From: Bugula neritina
Lineage: Eukaryota; Animalia; Bryozoa
Reading direction: 5' to 3'
NCBI GenBank assembly: GCA_964035545.1
Contig: CAXIUT010000019.1
Span: forward strand, 1 to 9,625
Length of the DNA stretch: 9,625 nucleotides
The notes beneath the pieces are model-generated. The model ran no database searches, had not been told where the DNA came from, and saw only the letters and a list, made by a program, of their open reading frames with translations. The translations under genes were made by a program, and so were the position numbers. Below are positions 1 through 9,625 of the stretch, piece after piece. Position 1 is the stretch's first letter; each line of letters begins with the position of its first letter.

Positions 1-65
1 CCCAACCCCAACCCCAACCCCAACCCCAACCCCAACCCCAACCCCAACCCCAACCCCAACCCCAA
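1..65. repeat. Left telomere, (CCCCAA)n, Tetrahymena-type C4A2 repeat
   Basis: Perfect tandem CCCCAA from base 1 to 65, C-rich on the + strand as expected for a left chromosome end. Confidence 0.98.
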
Positions 66-116: not shown

Positions 117-1242
117 ATGAAATTACTCAATAAATTATCTGTCTTTTTTTGTTCATAAAAACAACATAAAACCAAACTAACCAAACTCACATCTCGTAGT
201 CTGCTTGTTATCAACGGACCTGACACTCATAAGTATTAATTTATATACTAAGACTCCTACAAGGTCTCATGACTAATGACATACGCTCACTCAAATCTTT
301 TACTTCAGGTGGAAAACAATATACTAAAAATGCTTTTTTATACTTTGTTTCTGCAAGCAAAAGGGAAAATACTAACTGATGCTTTTATCATTCAACCGAG
401 AATGTATGTTGGCGGTCGACCATAATATTCAAAAGATGAGTTGTGGATTGATCTGCCTAAATAAAATAAAAATTTGTTGAAAAAACATCTTGAAAGAATG
501 ATGTGGAAAAAACAAGTCGACTTGCATGATGTTGAAGAAGGTTAAGAGTAGTACAAACCAACAGTTTATTCTGGCTATGTAAAATTATATTGATAAAGAA
601 TGAAGGGAATAAGAATTAAGAAGGAATGCTGGGAGGATCTGTGGAATTAGAATAGTTCTAGAAGGGTGAAGATGGTTCTTACGCTAACTTAATATACTTT
701 GATCCTAGAGGAAGTAATTTCGGGTTGAGAGTTATATCGATGCAACCTGAATTTTCAGTTGAGGGACATTTTTAGTATCTAGAGGAAAAGAAAAGGAATC
801 TATTGTACTAGAAGTTAGGATAGGTTCCTAGTTAGTATGGACGTAATAGGTTGCCATTCATGTTCAATTATGATTTTATGAATGCAATATCTCTCAAGAA
901 AGGATGTTTTTTGGGTCAGTAAACTGTTTCTAGAGGGTTAATGGCAGGTATAGTCAGAAGAAGATTATTTCCTTTCATCTTATAAAATCAAAACAGTAGT
1001 CTTTAGGCAAACAGTGTTATTAAAACTGAAGAGGGTGAAATAGGAAAAGTTCTTTTTCTGAAAGTGGACAAGGAATGGTTTTAGTTAACTATCTTGGATT
1101 GTTGTAGAAGAAAACCAAATGGCCTATTGCTTTTGTGACTCCTCAAGCTGGACAAATCATCAATCCTTTTGGAGAACTTCTGGAGAAGTATTATTAATAG
1201 ATGAAAGGCAAACAGAAGATCATGGAAGATCTTTAACTTTGA
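117..1242 (+). CDS. IBA57: IBA57/CAF17 (YgfZ family) mitochondrial Fe-S assembly factor, about 361 aa; introns 233-252 and 579-598; apparent +1 indel near 334-339 and -1 indel near 1053-1057
   Basis: With TAR=Glu: MKLLNKLS...SRSLLVINGPDTHK/LLQGLMTNDI...TLFLQAKGKILTDAFI...FDPRGSNFGLR...LPFMFNYDFMNAISLKKGCFLGQE(TAA 920-922)TVSRGLMAGIVRRRLFP. KGC[YF]xGQE is the YgfZ/IBA57 signature. TGA at 1240-1242 is reached after correcting the second indel. Confidence 0.9.
233..252 (+). other. Spliceosomal intron, 20 nt
   Basis: gtattaatttatatactaag; removal joins GPDTHK to the conserved LLQGLMTND. Confidence 0.9.
579..598 (+). other. Spliceosomal intron, 20 nt
   Basis: gtaaaattatattgataaag; contains an in-frame TGA, and removal restores the frame leading to DPR and KGCFLGQE. 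Confidence 0.85.
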
Positions 1243-1434
1243 TTATGTTATATTAAAGTATATTGCTCATAAATACCTGATAAATATTGTAGAAATATCA
1301 CAAGATTACCTCTCCTATTCATTATATCAAACACTTTATAAATAAAATCTATTCATAAAATCAAATCATAAAATATATTTCATGATATATTAAGCAAAAA
1401 TCAGATAATATGACGGATTAGTTAAATTTTATCA

Positions 1435-2742
1435 ATGTTTAAAAAATCAACAACTCCCAGATATCGTACTTCTATTATCTAACCTCTCCTTAAGATCATA
1501 ACTCTCACACTTCTGTCCATTTTCCTTCTTGTCTTCATGACTCAATCCTCTCCAGAAACCATCCGCAAGTATTTGAATTCATATCCAGCAACATCATATT
1601 CGGATTGGTCGTTTTCGCTATGATCGGCAATGTCTTCATGCCCAGAGGACCAATATAAGGTGCATTCGTTGTGGTTTGGCGATCAGTAACTGGTTTGAGT
1701 CTTTACTACCTCTTAGGTCTGATTTTCATGTTTTTCCACGTAAGTTTCCTTTTATTTAGACCCAACAGTAATCAAAAAATCTTATCTCTACTTACATCGA
1801 TCCTTCTCTATCATTTCTCAACTATGAATAAAGTTCATATGCTGAATAATGTACCTTAACAAGCACAAAACTCTACAACTCCTTCTTTGACTTTTTTGCC
1901 TTTAGTCATTTCGCAGGTTGGTTCTGCAAAACCTTGATATGTCGTGATGCTAAGTTACTTGTTTTCTCATCAATTGCTTTTGAAATGATTGAATATTCGT
2001 TAAGAAATGTGTTGAATAACTTTAAATAGTGTTGGTGGGATCATGTATTTACAGATATTCTTGGTTGTAATTTATTTGGTATGATTCTTGGTTTTTACTT
2101 CATTGATTTGGTCAAAATGGACAGATATCGATGGAGTTTGAGAACAGCACCATTGCAATATTCACACTGGACCATACTTAAAAACTTCATCAAGACTTGG
2201 GATCTAACACCAATATAAACAAAAACTTTCACATCATTAAAAAGATTCTTAAAAATGATGTTTCTTGTCATTTTAGTATTTTTTTAACTAATATAGTTCC
2301 AATTAAACGATTTAACTCTCTTCTTCATAAAATATCTAATGCAAATACCTCCAAATCATTTCATTTGCACATCTAGGGTAGCTATCATGGGTTGTCTAAG
2401 TTTAAATGCAGTAAAATAATACTATGACTTCATGCAATCTAAAAGCAAATCTCCAAAAACTAACATCACTCTCCTTGGCGCCATCATTTCTCTATAAGTG
2501 TTGCTGATTATTTACCAAGGACAAAGTAATATTGATATTATTCAGATCAATTTAACCATGCCTACATTGATCCTCTCGGACATGTTTTTCTAATAACTTT
2601 GTTGGTTGGATTTTTGATAGTTTTAGGAAAGATAGCTGTGAGTGATATCATTCGTGGAGTCAAAAAAATACAAGGATGCATTGAATAAAACAGAAAGATT
2701 TCAGAAAGAATGTAGAATGCCAAGATGATAAGATAGTTATGA
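1435..2742 (+). CDS. PTDSS: Phosphatidylserine synthase, base-exchange type (PTDSS1/2, PSS family), about 408 aa, multi-pass membrane protein; introns 1569-1588, 1740-1759, 2276-2296, 2526-2545
   Basis: MFKKSTT...IITLTLLSIFLLVF...PRGP...WRSVTGLSLYYLLGLIF...IDPSL...SYAEEC...DFFAFSHFAGWFCKTLICRD...SIAFEMIEYSL...NNFKE(TAG 2027-2029)CWWDHVFTDILGCN...FFIKYLMQIPPNH...KEYYDF. NFxECWWD is a PSS hallmark. The last ~25 codons are less certain (A7 run at 2662-2668). Confidence 0.93.
1569..1588 (+). other. Spliceosomal intron, 20 nt
   Basis: gtatttgaattcatatccag; joins the ATG-1435 frame (first TM helix) to the conserved PSS frame. Confidence 0.8.
1740..1759 (+). other. Spliceosomal intron, 20 nt
   Basis: gtaagtttccttttatttag; required to reach the IDPSL...ECWWD frame. 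Confidence 0.92.
2276..2296 (+). other. Spliceosomal intron, 21 nt (in frame, no TGA)
   Basis: gtatttttttaactaatatag; fits the GTA...AYNNAG consensus, but the frame does not force it. Confidence 0.72.
2526..2545 (+). other. Spliceosomal intron, 20 nt
   Basis: gtaatattgatattattcag; removal gives the final TM helix HVFLITLLVGFLIVLG. Confidence 0.85.
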
Positions 2743-2834
2743 TTTTTATTTGATATTTTATGACAATTATGGCAAAAAGTAAATAGTCAAACAATCAATA
2801 GACAATGGGGAATACTATTCTCGAGAATCACTCT

Positions 2835-3382
2835 TCATCTTCTCCTTCTATCTCTCCTTGAAGATTCAGAACTTGAAGAACTTGAACTAGAAGAAGATGA
2901 CGATGAACTGTACTTTCTTTTCCTGTGCTTCTCAATCTTTCTCGATTTTCTGTTGAATTAACATATCAATACCTCTTGTTTCTTGATGAATCAGAACTAG
3001 AAGAACTGGATGCACTTCTTCTTCTCAATATAATTATTCATTACCTTCTCGAATTAGGACAGTTCTTTTGCCTATGTGTATTTTAAATTTACCAATGTCC
3101 TTTCTTTCCGCATGATCGACAGACATCTTCATTTTTCGGTCCTCTTTCTCTTGATAGTTCGACTCTTAGTCTGTTTCCTTCGTAATCTTCTCCATTCATT
3201 TTTCTTGTTGCTTCAACAGCTCCAGAATGATCTTTGAAGACCTCTATAGTATAGAACAATACAACAAATGCAAAATCTCTCACCATTCTTACGTCACTGA
3301 TCGCACCATAAACTCCAAAAAGAGTTTATAGATCTCTTTATCCTGCTTTTTTTGGGAATCCTCGGACATAGACAGAAGTCAT
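2835..3382 (-). CDS. SR-family splicing factor (RRM + CCHC zinc knuckle + R/S-rich tail; SRSF7/RSZ-like), about 153 aa; introns 3242-3262, 3072-3092, 3024-3044, 2950-2972
   Basis: MTSVYVRGFPKKAGERDLETLFGVYGAISDVRMVRDFAFV/VFKD...AVEATRKMNGEDYEGNRLRVELSR...CRSCGKKGHW/QKNCP...RRRSASSSSSSDSSR...RRDRRRR-TGA. RNP2 and RNP1 are recognisable; CX2CX4HX4C forms only after splicing. Confidence 0.9.
2950..2972 (-). other. Spliceosomal intron, 23 nt
   Basis: gtattgatatgttaattcaacag; contains an in-frame TGA and restores the R/S frame. Confidence 0.85.
3024..3044 (-). other. Spliceosomal intron, 21 nt, GAG acceptor
   Basis: gtaatgaataattatattgag; in-frame TGA forces splicing. An alternative AAG acceptor 3 nt downstream is possible. 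Confidence 0.8.
3072..3092 (-). other. Spliceosomal intron, 21 nt (in frame, no TGA)
   Basis: gtaaatttaaaatacacatag; removal restores the HX4C spacing of the zinc knuckle. Confidence 0.88.
3242..3262 (-). other. Spliceosomal intron, 21 nt, GAG acceptor (in frame, no TGA)
   Basis: gtattgttctatactatagag; removal restores the RNP1-like RDFAFVVF. Confidence 0.72.
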
Positions 3383-3408
3383 GTTTGATTATAAAAGATA
3401 TATACAAA

Positions 3409-4371
3409 TCATTTCAACTTTTTAGGTTATGGAGATTCCTAGTCAATGACATAACTTTCCACTTAATCCCCAAATTTACGTAACTCATCTGAAAACTATA
3501 CACTACCTACATGTTTGCCTCTTTGAAGTTTTTTCGGTTGAGATTAATGAAATTTCCAAGCAATAAATTTACTCATTGCAAAAGTTGCAGTCACTGATTA
3601 ATCTTTTTGATATTGCCCATGATAGAGTGCACTTGCAGCTAGCAGTAAATCTTTGAATACACCTTTTCTTCTTCCTCTTAAGAAACCTGTCTCACCCATT
3701 TCTTGTAGCAAAACAAGCAAATCAACAAAAGATTCAAATTGAACTTATTACTAGTGTTGAAGAATGGTGATTAGTTCATAGTTGGAACTGGTAAGAAAAG
3801 ATCCTGTTTATCCAAGTGATGGAAATGGAAATATCTTTGGACTCATACCTCCACAACGCTAATTCTACGCCAATATATATGCCCAGTATAATTACTTCAA
3901 TGTTCCCTAGACAAAAGATGTTCCAACAAGTGCTCCATCAGGTTGAAGACTTCTCAAATATTTTCTATAAAGATCTTACTAGCTGTTACAATGATGATTT
4001 TGTAAAGAAGAGATCAACAAATCATAGCTATTTTAATCTGGCACCCAGTTATCAGGACCAGATATATATCTCATTTATTTGACACCATTTTTACCAACCA
4101 ATTATTCTTTTTTTTGAGCTCTTATGTAATCAACTAAAGTTATATTGTATTAATTTTTTCCATATTTTTTGTTATGTTATTCTAAGAAAGGCAAAATTAG
4201 TTATGGATGTTATCCTGTGATGCAAATATTGGTGAAAGGACGTTTGACATCCATGATCATGTCTTGGATTTGATTAGAAGATAGAGAAGAAAGTGCTAAT
4301 TGTACAGGATTTGATGTAGATAGACGAGATTGATGCAATTTTAATAACTATGTTACTATTTTTCTTTTCAT
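3409..4371 (-). CDS. NDUFAF5: NDUFAF5-like SAM-methyltransferase-fold complex I assembly factor (arginine hydroxylase family), 320 aa, intronless
   Basis: ...DVKRPF...ENSYDLLISSLQNHHCN...SLQPDGALVGTSFVEGTLKELYWAYILAENERCGGMSPKIFPF...LLQEMGE...DLLLAASALY...VTATFAMSKFIAWKFHESQPKKLQRG. This follows the NDUFAF5 motif series (LKPDG, TLxEL, AExERxGGxSP, MGE, ATF, WK...SQPKPxxRG). TGA at 3409-3411. Confidence 0.88.
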
Positions 4372-4505
4372 TGTTATTTATAATCTAACTTTTATAATAT
4401 TCAGAAATTGGTATTACTCATGAGTAAAGAATTGGTTAGTATCTTGATGATGATTTAAAATGGTTGCTAGCTCATATTATCATAGTTCAAATTTATTGAA
4501 TTGAA

Positions 4506-6010
4506 TCATTTCATCAAAACCTCAATATCTTCTATAACTATCTTTCCACTATTTTCAACTTTTTTATCTTCACTCAATGCAAATTGAACAAACCCTTTAG
4601 CCATATCAAGAGCTGCCTCTCCCTGGTCCATAGGTATCAAATGCCCTCCATCATTAATCATTCTTAATTCCAACTTACCCACCCTCTTATAAAACCCCTT
4701 AACTGAATCTCTAATTTTCCAAGGAGTCAATAAAGTATTTCTATATAACAAAAAAACTACTTGAAATTATCTCCATCCATAAGATGTAAATTCTAAACCC
4801 AAGCCAAAGTACCAGGAGTATTACATATTATATCATTCTGACCAGTATAAATCAACATCTTGGTTTTGTAATTTTGAAGAATACGGTTCACTGCATCAAC
4901 TTCACTTTTCATAAAATCTTAATACAATGCCTCAAACACATTGGCAGCTTGATGACCATACTTTACCTTAGGATTGAGGTTGAATAAATTGATAGTTTAA
5001 GTGCTATCGAAATAGGTATTCAATATCTACATAGGATAATCTTTGTATTTAGTCATATCGTAGACATTCACTCCACCTGTCACATCAACTATCGAATCCA
5101 GAACTTAGTAGAAAGATACCTGGAGATCTCTCCATCGCTAGTTTATATTTTGATAGGTTGCATTTTGTATCACTTATTCGATTTTGCTTCTTTCTTGGTA
5201 ATCAAGTAATCCAAAATTATATGCATATTAGCCCATCTTTGTCAATGTACTAAATGGGTTAGTAAATCCATCGCCAATAGCTACTCCTTTTAGTCCAGTC
5301 AAAAAACCACCAGCTGAGGCTTCAGATAAAATCTTATCACCAATAACTGGAGCATATTTACCACCGTAGCTTTATCCAAATACAAAAAGTGGATTAGAAC
5401 CTTTGAAATTGAGATGCTGGAAACATCCATTAGGTGATTGATAGAGTTATTTCAGTGCGTGATAGAAATCTGCAGCCATTTATTTCATATTAGTCACATA
5501 TACGTTTGGTTGGGCTGGGTCAGCGTAAGATAGACCTGTGCCGACAGGTTGATCAATAAAAAGAACATTGTATTCAGTTGTCCAGGCAAATTAATTCCGA
5601 GTTATCTAGTAGGGATATACTTTGCTGGGATTAACTCTGAATGGTCCAAGTTACATAAAGTTACCAATCTGACTGGATGACCCTGGTCCTCCATTCAACC
5701 AGATAATAGTTGGTACATTGACTACTTGATTTCTTGCTACATTTTCTTTCCCAAAGAAAATAAAAGTCAAAGCTGAGTTTCCTTTTCCTACATCAAGGGA
5801 ACCTGACATGACAGTTCCATTATACATATAAGGAGCCCGCGTGAGATTGATATCATGACATTGTGTCTAAAATGTTAGCTGGTAGTCAGAAAAGTCATGG
5901 AGCTTGTTGTCAGTGACATCAAAGCCACGGTTTAGCCAATATTTAGGGGATTGGAATATGGCAAGAGTCACTGAAAAGAGAAGAAGAAGGGATATGATGA
6001 GTTTTGACAT
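4506..6010 (-). CDS. Serine carboxypeptidase, peptidase family S10, secreted/lysosomal, about 494 aa; intron 4741-4760
   Basis: Signal peptide MSKLIISLLLLFSVTLA; WLNGGPGSSSQIGNFMELGP; NVLFIDQPVGTGLSY; catalytic Ser in FGE(TAA 5372-5374)SYGGKY; GVAIGDG; catalytic Asp in YTGQNDIICN; catalytic His in DGGHLIPMDQ. Confidence 0.96.
4741..4760 (-). other. Spliceosomal intron, 20 nt
   Basis: gtagtttttttgttatatag; required to join the catalytic-Asp exon to the catalytic-His exon. Confidence 0.92.
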
Positions 6011-6171
6011 GATATTTTAATGAATGAATTATCTACTAGATCAATTAATGAATAAATGAATAGATATTTAATTGATAATTCAGATTATTTGGAAATTAAC
6101 AAAAATAGTAATAATTGACCTTCTTAGGCTATCTCAATCGAATATCAATTATAAAAATATCTTTATACATA

Positions 6172-6461
6172 ATGTCAAAACGCAATAAATCAAAATCAAA
6201 GCAACCTCAAGTCGAACAACCATAATAACATGACCCATCCCAGTACTTTTGTATTTGATTCAGACACCGACTCAACTGCATGCATCGTTTCATTCAAGAC
6301 AAAAACTCACTGAAAGGCTAAGATCTGAAAAACTTCCTCAAAGTATAAATTTGTTAATTTAGGAAATAAGTGAACCTCATGTCAAAGGAAGTTTTTCAGT
6401 AAGTGAAACAAAAATAGTGGAATATTATGATAAAATTGATTCAAAGAAAAAAGAAGAATGA
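6172..6461 (+). CDS. Small hypothetical charged protein, about 82 aa; introns 6243-6263 and 6343-6362
   Basis: ATG after an AT-rich leader; MSKRNKSKSKQPQVEQPEEHDPSQ/HRLNCMHRFIQDKNSLKGEDLKNFLK/EISEPHVKGSFSVSETKIVEYYDKIDSKKKEE-TGA. Two consensus tiny introns support expression. No family recognised. Confidence 0.7.
6243..6263 (+). other. Spliceosomal intron, 21 nt
   Basis: gtacttttgtatttgattcag; contains an in-frame TGA and fits the consensus. Confidence 0.75.
6343..6362 (+). other. Spliceosomal intron, 20 nt
   Basis: gtataaatttgttaatttag; fits the consensus. Confidence 0.75.
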
Positions 6462-6609: not shown

Positions 6610-8177
6610 TCATTCTCTATTTTTCCCAAAATACCCTGTTCCACTCCTACTTTGCCTATTTATCCATCTTTTTCCATTCTTACCAGCTCTTTCTGAAGGA
6701 TATTCACCTTCTCTAACCATATTAACACTTCCAATCTGTAAATTCAGGTTCAAATTGACCACATTATTCCTGCCTTATTGTTTAATTTTGCCTAATTTAG
6801 CAAACAAAGACTCTTCTAATCCAATATTAGTAAAAGACTAAGTAAATTATTTGTGTTTTGATTGAAGTTCTTTATCTGATGTTTTGTAGGAATGGACTTT
6901 ATGACGTAATGGAAGATCTGTTTTGATATTTTTTACACTTGTTTTGTTCGATTTTATCTTGAAGATGTTACTTGGCTGTTTATATGGTTAGGGTTCATGT
7001 TGAGATAAATCAGTATAACATCTTTTAGATAGTTTTTTTGTTACTAATCTTGATTTGGTACTTTTTTGTGGTTGTTGAGATTGAACTGATTGTTTTTGTT
7101 AGATTTTAAAAGAATCACTATTGCTGAAGTTATCTACCTTCAACTAAAAGCATTGTTCTATATCTGATTGCTATGTTTTGGAAACAGCTCTCTTTCTCGG
7201 TTGAATTCTGATCTATCTCTTTTTGGTTTCCTTTTCATGAGCTAACTATCCTCCTCTTTTTTAGGTTATTTATGATTCTTGGGAACAACATCGCTATCGA
7301 ATAAACTATCTCAATCTTCCTTCCATTGTTTTCAACTTTCTACTATTATCAGTTTTCTCAACTTTATCTCCATTACTATTTCCAATTAGAATAATCTATT
7401 ATTGTTAATTTTACTATTCCAAGAAGAAGTTATCTATTTCTATACATGGAGTTCTATGAACAGGTTAAATGTATTATACAGTTGAATTGAAGGTTACTTT
7501 TGATGGTAAAGATTTTTATTGCTATTTTCTGTAACTTAAACCCTGATAATTTGGCATATTTCTCTTTTAACTATTTACTAACGTGTTTCTAACCATTTAC
7601 TAATGTTATTGTTGCCATTCTTTATTAAAAGTTTCTTGTAATCTTCTCATTTATTTGTTATTAACCAACTTCTTCAACATAGTAACATACTTATTCTCAA
7701 TTTTTATCTAACATTTACTTTACACCATCTACACAACATCATCTATACTCCATGCGAATCTTCCAATAAAATAAGCACAAACTACTATCATACTCTTACT
7801 ATCCACTTCCTTACTAACAATCATTACTCCTTCACACTTATCTTCCATACAATTTTCAATATTCTTGATAATATTTATCAGTTTTTTTGGACTTGTTGAG
7901 TCTACATCTCCTTTTTTATTGCTCAAAAAATACTACAAATTAGTAACTTGATTGTTTGGTTTAACACTTTGAGGTTGGGCATTGATAACCAGTCCTATCT
8001 TATTATTGTTGATGAATTATTAATCCTATATTGAGGTAGAGATACGCTGGCTCCATGATTATTTGAGAGGAAGAGACCGTCAATGAGTTTGATTGTGATT
8101 AACTATGTATTGGAAGTTGGAGGTTCAGAGTAGTATGCGGGTGATATTGTTATTGGGTAGATCGAAGGAGTGAACAT
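6610..8177 (-). CDS. Dual-specificity-phosphatase-like protein with degenerate active site and long low-complexity C-terminus, about 515 aa; intron 8026-8045
   Basis: IKLIDGLFLSNNHGAS/DEEFINNNKIGLVINA...IENCMEDKCEGVMIVSKEVDSKSMIVVCAYFIGRFAWSIDDVVEMV follows DSP fold order (GLFLG, ITHIIN, VLVHCxxGxSRS, AYLM). The frame stays open to TGA at 6610-6612. Confidence 0.82.
8026..8045 (-). other. Spliceosomal intron, 20 nt
   Basis: gtatctctacctcaatatag; joins the GLFLS exon to the DEEFI frame. Confidence 0.87.
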
Positions 8178-8246
8178 GTTTATATTTATTATTATTAACA
8201 AGTTAAGAAGGAATCAAATAACTTTCCCTTAAATCTAATTGATTTA

Positions 8247-9443
8247 TCATTTTCTACGAATGAATTTAGGTTGTTATTCTTCCATGAATAGCTGTTTACC
8301 TGTCGATCCCATAGGAATAAACGAGGTTCTTCTTGTTTTCTTTGATGAACTCAAAGTATAACGTCTGTTCTCACCTTCAATCATATCAATTTATCCTTAT
8401 TTCTTTGATGACTCGAATTCTTGCTACTTTTATTTGACAATAACAATTGTAGGCTAATTCTACTGTTATCTATTGTTGACTGATTTCTCTTTTAAAACAT
8501 GATCTGAATCAGATAGAAAAGATGTTAGCTGAGCTAGGGTTTTGGATGTCTATAGCTATTGATATCGTTTTTTTATGGCTGCTATTGGAGTCTTAATGTA
8601 TAGTTAAAACTATTGTGATTGTTTTGATGTGTATTTGTAGGTATAAAGATGATCTCTTTTTAGTTATTCTATTTTTTATTATTTTTGCATTATCTATGCT
8701 GTTAATCTGTTTATCTTAGCATACAACTAAAGCTAATTTTCATCTTTTTTGTTATTTATACTCACAATATCCTCTATTTTCGAAAGTAACTATTTATTTT
8801 TCAACTATAATCTCAATATTTCTTTCTAGTATATTTCTCTTTATCTTTAAAACTATTTTTCTATCTTCTACACCATTTTCTCACTTATTTTTAACTTCTA
8901 GCAAACATTTACATATTCTTTACTCTTTAACACAAAATCTCCATCAAATCCACTCCCATCATCATCTCTCTACCTCACCAAAGCTCCTTCTATACCTTTC
9001 CTTATCATCAGTACTCGTTTATTTATCCCTTCTAATATTTACTAACTATTTCCCTTTCTCACGATCTCCTGACCTAACAAAAATGAATACCGACTATTAT
9101 TAGAATTACATTGATGATCAACTTGATATTTCAGTTTAGTTTTAGTTTTTTATAAGTAGTGTTGTTCATCAATCAACTTGTCATACTATCTGAGCAGAAT
9201 TGATTACTAGCAATGTTATTATAGAGATGGTCTAAGTTAATATTAAAAGAAATTGTATTTTTACTTGATTGAATGATAGAGTTGGAAGTTATTTTCATAT
9301 TATTTGGACAATTTTTATCTCAACTAATCGAAGAATTGATTTTTATTTGAGGTACTATTACTAGATACTTTACTATCAGTTGAATTCATTGATTTCCTCC
9401 TGTTTTTAGCGATTATATTCTATTTATTCTAAGCAATTAGCAT
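8247..9443 (-). CDS. Hypothetical E/K-rich coiled-coil protein, 398 aa, intronless, with N-terminal KEN-box-like motif
   Basis: A 1197-nt TGA-free frame: MLIAENKENII...KMVEKIEKEFEREREIYEKEILRLELKNKELLSKIEDIV...AEIMQKEEKIEELKRD...QPKFIRRK-TGA. No family recognised. Confidence 0.8.
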
Positions 9444-9517: not shown

Positions 9518-9625
9518 TGGGGTTGGGGTTGGGGTTGGGGTTGGGGTTGGGGTTGGGGTTGGGGTTGGGGTTGGGGTTGGGGTTGGGGTTGGGGTTGGGG
9601 TTTGGGGTTTGGGGTTGGGGTTGGG
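9518..9625. repeat. Right telomere, (TTGGGG)n
   Basis: Tandem GGGGTT to the end of the window, G-rich on the + strand; two TTTGGGG variants at 9601-9614. Confidence 0.98.

Follow-up and report, generated by a model that had tools for sequence, protein, structure and literature searches.

UAA and UAG read as glutamate, with termination at UGA, on a telomere-capped ciliate chromosome in an animal genome assembly

The DNA analysed here, a stretch of 9,625 nucleotides (hereafter the window), takes up the entire contig CAXIUT010000019.1 (C28) of the Bugula neritina assembly GCA_964035545.1, which comprises 216 Mb in 321 contigs. We found that this 9.6-kb window, with a G+C content of ∼31%, is a complete small macronuclear (somatic) chromosome of a ciliate living on the sequenced marine animal, and that TAA and TAG are ordinary sense codons in the genes of this ciliate. 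The assignment of UAA to glutamate is supported by conserved positions in several proteins, that of UAG to glutamate is supported by fewer sites, and UGA is supported as the only termination codon. Together these assignments constitute translation table 30, which the sequence-only reading of the window had put forward in place of table 6; conserved-site alignments and codon log-odds both bear out that choice. The nature of the molecule is given by its ends, where direct reading shows C4A2 repeats at 1-65 and G4T2 repeats at 9519-9625; the window is therefore a complete telomere-capped macronuclear chromosome. The large contigs of the assembly belong to another eukaryote, the host, whose own eRF1, phosphatidylserine synthase (PSS), tubulin and actin genes use the standard code and are split by ordinary introns. 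The features on which the argument draws are as follows.

1-65, plus strand: 5′ telomere, (CCCCAA)n
330-1138, plus strand: gene 1, YgfZ/IBA57 (CAF17)-like, with a 20-nt intron at 579-598, TAA at 920-922 and its TGA at 1136-1138
1410-2617, plus strand: gene 2, PSS (Pfam PF03034, three stop-free pieces), with a 20-nt intron at 1740-1759, a possible 21-nt intron at 2276-2296, TAG at 2027-2029, TAA at 2417-2419 and its TGA at 2615-2617
4506-6010, minus strand: gene 5, S10 serine carboxypeptidase (Pfam PF00450, five pieces in profile order), 494 codons including 10 TAA and 5 TAG, with a 20-nt intron at 4741-4760, TAA at 5372-5374 (G-E-SYGG) and 5651-5653 (FM-E-LGP), and its TGA at 4506-4508
9519-9625, plus strand: 3′ telomere, (GGGGTT)n, the last two units being GGGGTTT

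Gene models were built with TGA as the sole stop from long frames on both strands, allowing very short GT..AG introns (20 or 21 nt), and families were assigned by searching the stop-free pieces one by one against Pfam and NCBIfam. In a six-frame Pfam search, PSS appeared as one match at 1769-2512 (187 bits) that runs through two TAG and seven TAA codons. Its neighbouring stop-free pieces cover profile positions 55-113 and 115-168, and since the profile skips only one column between them, TAG 2027-2029 fills exactly one column. Likewise, the S10 family pieces fall in profile order across TAA and TAG, and TGA does not occur within the PSS, S10 or YgfZ family matches. The piece of gene 1 at 836-919 matches TIGR03317 (NCBIfam), and the read-through match to this family at 845-1060, via one TAG and two TAA, scored 45.5 bits, under the 49-bit cut-off of the family. 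All of the TAA and TAG codons to which the sequence-only reading had drawn attention lie at the positions given for them and in frame.

To assign a residue to these codons within S10, a reference set of 83 relatives was retrieved with a 71-residue piece, and 81 of them were aligned to the gene model with an X at each TAA or TAG. The TAA at 5651-5653 (FM-?-LGP) faced E in 54 of 62 homologues and the TAA at 5372-5374 (G-?-SYGG), beside the catalytic serine, in 30 of 31, so that both codons do stand at conserved glutamates of the family, as had been claimed. Even at the variable sites 5447, 5480, 5606 and 4793, E was still the most frequent residue. Further support came from the host proteins: the TAA at 920-922, proposed as the glutamate of KGCFLGQ-E, faces the E of host KGCFIGQE, and the TAG at 2027-2029, proposed as that of NFK-E-CWWD, faces the E of NFAECWWD in each of the two PSS paralogues of the host. 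Direct reading of the window also showed that the conserved glutamines of DQPVG and GQ are encoded by CAA or CAG and tryptophan by TGG, just as the sequence-only reading had noticed.

The codon survey of the ciliate covers seven genes, several of them on other contigs; these contigs were assigned to the same ciliate by the common code, backed for most of them by telomeres of the same type. For alpha-tubulin, of which the ciliate has one gene on C87 and one on C16, the reference set consisted of 120 sequences across eukaryotes, and columns with at least 80% conservation were taken as conserved. In these columns TAA corresponded to E in 10 of 10 cases and TAG in 2 of 2, while the control codons behaved as expected from their standard meaning (GAA/GAG as E, 25/25; CAA/CAG as Q, 18/18; AAA/AAG as K, 25/26). 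At the FFS-E-TG site one paralogue has TAG and the other TAA, and many TAA codons of the C16 copy correspond to GAA or GAG in the C87 copy. The ciliate eRF1 gene, on C314 (locus positions 7036-8373, minus strand), was aligned to the host eRF1 exons; the host has E at four of four TAG sites (GKEKK, DFEPF, RLEKRHNY and VAETA) and at three of five TAA sites (GGENG, QAIE and IQEK). A tRNA-Pro(UGG) gene lies directly upstream of this eRF1.

Profile-type codon scoring, which had been suggested as a check on the window, was carried out as a Codetta-like log-odds calculation over S10 and both alpha-tubulins, with 25 TAA and 7 TAG sites, and placed glutamate on top for each of the two codons. For TAA, E was the sole residue with a positive score (+61.3 bits), followed by Q at -40.0, 101 bits behind, and with Lys outside the best four. 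For TAG, E scored +8.6 bits, with D next at -3.4 (12 bits behind) and Q 13 bits behind. The eight control codons (GAA, GAG, CAA, CAG, AAA, AAG, TAT and GAT) were all decoded correctly.

Termination was judged from genes whose C-termini are fixed by homology. In this small sample of one window gene, S10, and five genes on other contigs (eRF1, the two alpha-tubulins, beta-tubulin on C10 and EF-1alpha on C60), all six stop at TGA. The earlier statement that all eight genes of the window end in TGA is partly true by construction; for S10 it holds independently, its TGA lying where the homologues end. In alpha-tubulin 1, TAA occurs 5 and 10 codons before the TGA, within the acidic tail, at positions where the references carry E or D. 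Nearness to the 3′ end therefore does not make TAA a stop there.

The contribution of the two codons to the glutamate content is considerable. With GAA and GAG only, the S10 protein would contain 2.6% glutamate, which rises to 5.7% when TAA and TAG are added, and TAA and TAG together outnumber GAA and GAG together in S10, in gene 4 (see below) and in the YgfZ-like gene. At roughly half of the glutamate positions or more, ordinary genes of this ciliate have TAA or TAG, and its actin genes are so dense in them that the stop-free pieces were too short for a search. EF-1alpha (C60) and beta-tubulin (C10) contain no TAA and no TAG. The reassigned codons are avoided by the most highly expressed genes, an avoidance that is strong and linked to expression.

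The sequence-only reading had suggested that tRNAs with UUA and CUA anticodons be sought. Pattern searches of the whole assembly yielded two genes of the CUA type, on small AT-rich contigs, one of which (C10) bears C4A2 repeats:

C10:16787-16858: tRNA(CUA), 72 nt, accepted by ARAGORN, with a T-run terminator
C256:3983-4054: tRNA(CUA), 72 nt, accepted by ARAGORN, with a T-run terminator

The two are ∼75-80% identical to one another. The C10 gene shares with the ciliate tRNA-Glu(UUC) on C54 the U1-A72, C2-G71, C3-G70 end, the GGTTAGGA D-arm and a four-base variable loop. Its 5′ half is thus Glu-like, and its 3′ half resembles host tRNA-Lys as much as anything. Overall identity to this tRNA-Glu(UUC), the sole one found for the ciliate, is only ∼63%, and with this value and the tRNA-Lys-like 3′ half the tRNA(CUA) genes are no more than candidate glutamate tRNAs. 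The UUA half of the search gave nothing: four IUPAC patterns run over the whole assembly found no tRNA(UUA) on ciliate contigs, which is not evidence of absence, since the assembly covers the ciliate genome only in part. Nor did a Glu-like D-arm pattern, BLAST with the tRNA(CUA) or a pattern derived from its D-arm reveal Glu-type or UUA-type paralogues. On a host chromosome, ARAGORN reported as ‘tRNA-Stop’ a tRNA-like gene with anticodon TTA (C5:1314247-1314321), in all likelihood a pseudogene or else a repeat derived from a tRNA.

Substitutions in the N-terminal domain of eRF1, proposed as another place to look, are indeed present. HMMER alignment showed that the GTS loop reads NG-SVV against human NGTSMI, with a one-residue deletion that removes Thr32, and the YxCxxxF motif reads YNCDSRF against human YLCDNKF. 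By eye, the translation has RASQIKD in the NIKS region, against human TASNIKS; a short eRF1 piece from this region gave no match in PDB. We propose that UAA and UAG would be decoded by dedicated tRNAs charged with glutamate, the observed CUA genes presumably being accompanied by one with a UUA anticodon. The diverged N-terminal domain of eRF1 may no longer recognise UAA and UAG, which would leave a factor specific for UGA.

Several observations weigh against glutamate as the single meaning of both codons, in addition to the low identity of the tRNA(CUA) genes to tRNA-Glu and the missing tRNA(UUA). The TAA at 2417-2419 (VK-?-YY) had been listed among the family-conserved glutamates, a claim that did not hold, as the sole host PSS paralogue aligned there has Q (AIKQYY). 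At the S10 TAA 5591-5593, a less conserved site, homologues carry N, K or V, and the remaining two TAA codons of eRF1 face P and A in the host. The TAG evidence of the window amounts to one verified site, 2027-2029, the other TAG evidence being from further contigs. At gene ends, gene 3 finishes with ...RR-TAA-TGA (3038-3043) and PSS has TAA-TAA six codons upstream of its TGA (2591-2617); from the DNA alone, TAA in either place may be glutamate or a first stop, with the TGA as a second. Occasional termination at TAA is thus possible.

Reading both codons as glutamine (table 6) would conform to the commonest variant among oligohymenophoreans and would suit the Q opposite TAA 2417-2419, and Q is also among the residues at the S10 TAA 5480-5482. 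We nevertheless regard it as extremely unlikely: glutamine trails glutamate by the 101 and 13 bits given above for TAA and TAG, the conserved tubulin columns with TAA or TAG are E in 12 of 12 cases whereas CAA and CAG there correspond to Q in 18 of 18, and the near-invariant S10 columns under TAA are E. Just as little credence can be given to the split code of Oligohymenophorea sp. PL0344, in which TAA is lysine and TAG glutamate. Its bearer is an oligohymenophorean that stops at TGA (PMC10553269), and it would accommodate the recovery of tRNA(CUA) genes without any for UUA, the similarity of the 3′ half of one of them to host tRNA-Lys, and the K seen at some variable TAA sites in S10 homologues. 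In the conserved TAA columns of S10 and alpha-tubulin, however, no K was found; glutamate was the only residue scoring positively for TAA, with lysine not in the best four, and TAA and TAG share one glutamate site in the two tubulin paralogues.

A dual meaning, with TAA and TAG as glutamate inside genes and also as some gene ends, in the manner of Blastocrithidia (table 31) or of context-dependent ciliate codes, would account for the endings of gene 3 and PSS, where the true protein ends are ambiguous from DNA. Since all six homology-fixed ends are TGA and the TAA codons 5 and 10 codons ahead of the TGA of alpha-tubulin 1 stand at E/D positions, we consider it very unlikely. Decayed pseudogenes or assembly errors, with no variant code at all, might be thought of for a contig that is a contaminant in the assembly of another organism, in which some ciliate contigs look chained. 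Against this, the frames are intact over hundreds of codons without TGA, the ‘stops’ are specific to glutamate columns, conservation extends over the full length of tubulin and eRF1, and matching tRNA(CUA) genes exist, so that this explanation can be practically dismissed.

We are highly confident in the explanation as a whole, a macronuclear chromosome of a ciliate whose nuclear genes follow table 30; the organism itself is most likely a sessile peritrich that lives attached to the animal sequenced. The S10 relatives and the C4A2 telomeres, judged by sequence similarity rather than by a tree, weakly suggest the class Oligohymenophorea: the best named full-length relatives of S10 are Tetrahymena spp. 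and Paramecium, and the C4A2 repeat is the Tetrahymena/Paramecium type of telomere. Phyllopharyngean contigs, in contrast, have C4A3 telomeres (PMC11687900). Three peritrich genomes reportedly have narrow intron-length distributions, similar to that of Paramecium (PMC13685798). C4A2 telomeres, S10 relatives, introns of 20-21 nt and life on a sessile marine animal together indirectly favour a peritrich, and it is quite likely that the ciliate is one. Screening of the assembly with Rfam RF01960 and a universal 18S sequence word detected host rDNA only, in the C6 array and the C135 copies, and no ciliate small-subunit ribosomal DNA (SSU rDNA), despite hundreds of ciliate contigs. Because only host rDNA is present, the peritrich-specific 18S primers Peri974F and Peri1403R (PMC4103560) had no target and are uninformative either way. 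The alpha-tubulin piece and the full EF-1alpha found only environmental relatives, at 84-95% identity. An EF-1alpha labelled ‘Bdellovibrionales bacterium’ (MCB0368484.1, from a metagenome-assembled genome) is 85% identical to that of the ciliate and probably represents ciliate DNA that was wrongly binned with a bacterium. The alternative that the ciliate belongs to another oligohymenophorean lineage, which independently reassigned UAA and UAG to glutamate, is improbable; if true, this code would have arisen twice among the ciliates, and the tRNA(CUA) genes would not be recent copies of its own tRNA-Glu.

The glutamate reading of UAR (UAA and UAG) in peritrichs was reportedly first described by Sanchez-Silva et al. 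in 2003. It is documented as the peritrich nuclear code, with UGA as the stop (PMC11687900, citing earlier work), and the codes of Carchesium and Campanella have been predicted (PMC4967479). Table 30, known from Vorticella, Opisthonecta, Carchesium and Campanella, has the same TAA = Glu, TAG = Glu and TGA stop, without any difference to the code found here. As all three of its assignments were tested and found in the present ciliate, the code itself is not new; it has been textbook knowledge since 2003-2016, and the present instance adds little. The view of the sequence-only reading that the code is not the ciliate UAR = Gln code and matches table 30 thus agrees with the codon tests and the literature, which makes it an ordinary finding. 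It would gain interest if the organism proved not to be a peritrich, or through work on its tRNAs and eRF1 that addressed the mechanism by which UAR is decoded as glutamate.

Among related systems, table 6 (Tetrahymena, Paramecium and Oxytricha) also has both UAR codons reassigned and UGA as the sole stop, with glutamine there and glutamate here, and its mechanism of suppressor tRNAs and a UGA-only eRF1 follows the same logic as the one proposed above. Blastocrithidia, a trypanosomatid with table 31, reads UAR as glutamate and UGA as tryptophan, and UAA also terminates there. It has UAR = Glu in common with the present ciliate, whose stop is UGA and whose homology-fixed gene ends include none at UAA. 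PL0344 is, as the present ciliate probably is, an oligohymenophorean, and the two share UAG = Glu, tRNA(CUA) genes and a UGA stop, but PL0344 reads UAA as lysine rather than glutamate, and its introns have a median of 57 bp as opposed to 20-21 nt (PMC10553269). Compared with peritrichs, the small multi-gene chromosomes of 5-25 kb seen here have no such description in the peritrich literature that we examined. In practical terms, gene callers that apply the standard or the bacterial code break such genes into fragments, of which public protein collections are full, and ∼300 contigs of the animal assembly should carry a ciliate flag and be translated with table 30.

The remaining genes of the window are listed below.

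3038-3382, minus strand: gene 3, a small RRM and CCHC zinc-knuckle protein (Pfam RRM_1; zf-CCHC under its cut-off)
3242-3262 and 3072-3092, minus strand: in-frame 21-nt introns of gene 3
3409-4371, minus strand: gene 4, TGA-only frame of 320 codons with 16 TAA and 8 TAG, including TAG at 3859-3861 and 3865-3867; TGA at 3409-3411
6172-6461, plus strand: gene 6, a small open frame without family match, in TGA-only frames with likely introns at 6243-6263 and 6343-6362 and a TGA end
6610-8079, minus strand: gene 7, TGA-free frame of 489 codons with 20 TAA and 15 TAG
8247-9420, minus strand: gene 8, TGA-free frame rich in TAA and TAG, with an uncertain upstream limit

In gene 3, splicing out 3072-3092 yields a perfect CX2CX4HX4C knuckle, and both of its 21-nt in-frame introns contain TAA codons. 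Some of the in-frame TAA and TAG codons that the sequence-only reading may have counted sit in tiny introns (3072-3092, 4741-4760 and probably 2276-2296). The ‘ERDLE’ sites of gene 3 fall in weakly conserved columns of the RRM. For gene 4, searches of Pfam, NCBIfam, the PDB sequences and the host genome gave no match; despite these negative searches it is a probable NDUFAF5-like methyltransferase, in which LAENER, with the TAG codons at 3859-3861 and 3865-3867 as putative glutamates, would align with LAETERE of NDUFAF5. A Pfam search with gene 7 gave nothing above the cut-off, and one with the frame of gene 8 gave no match. Three introns of the window have 20 nt (579-598, 1740-1759 and 4741-4760) and at least two have 21 nt (3072-3092 and 3242-3262). 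As both lengths coexist, the introns of this ciliate do not keep strictly to 20 nt.

Elsewhere in the assembly, an overall telomere search gave more than 8,000 matches, and C4A2 repeats also begin contigs C10, C11, C14 and C15. Besides its C4A2 start, C10 (21,272 bp) has G4T2 tracts at three internal places, all oriented alike (9694-9747, 10934-11011 and 19627-19680), each of which runs into unrelated AT-rich DNA; C11, C14 and C15 are similar in look. Either small chromosomes are chained to one another in contigs of this kind, or the arrangement is an artefact of assembly. On C214, more than 11 tRNAs of bacterial or organelle type are clustered within ∼4 kb. Finally, C73, with ∼19% G+C and a duplicated organelle-type tRNA at 6136-6178 and 17708-17750, is probably mitochondrial DNA of the ciliate.

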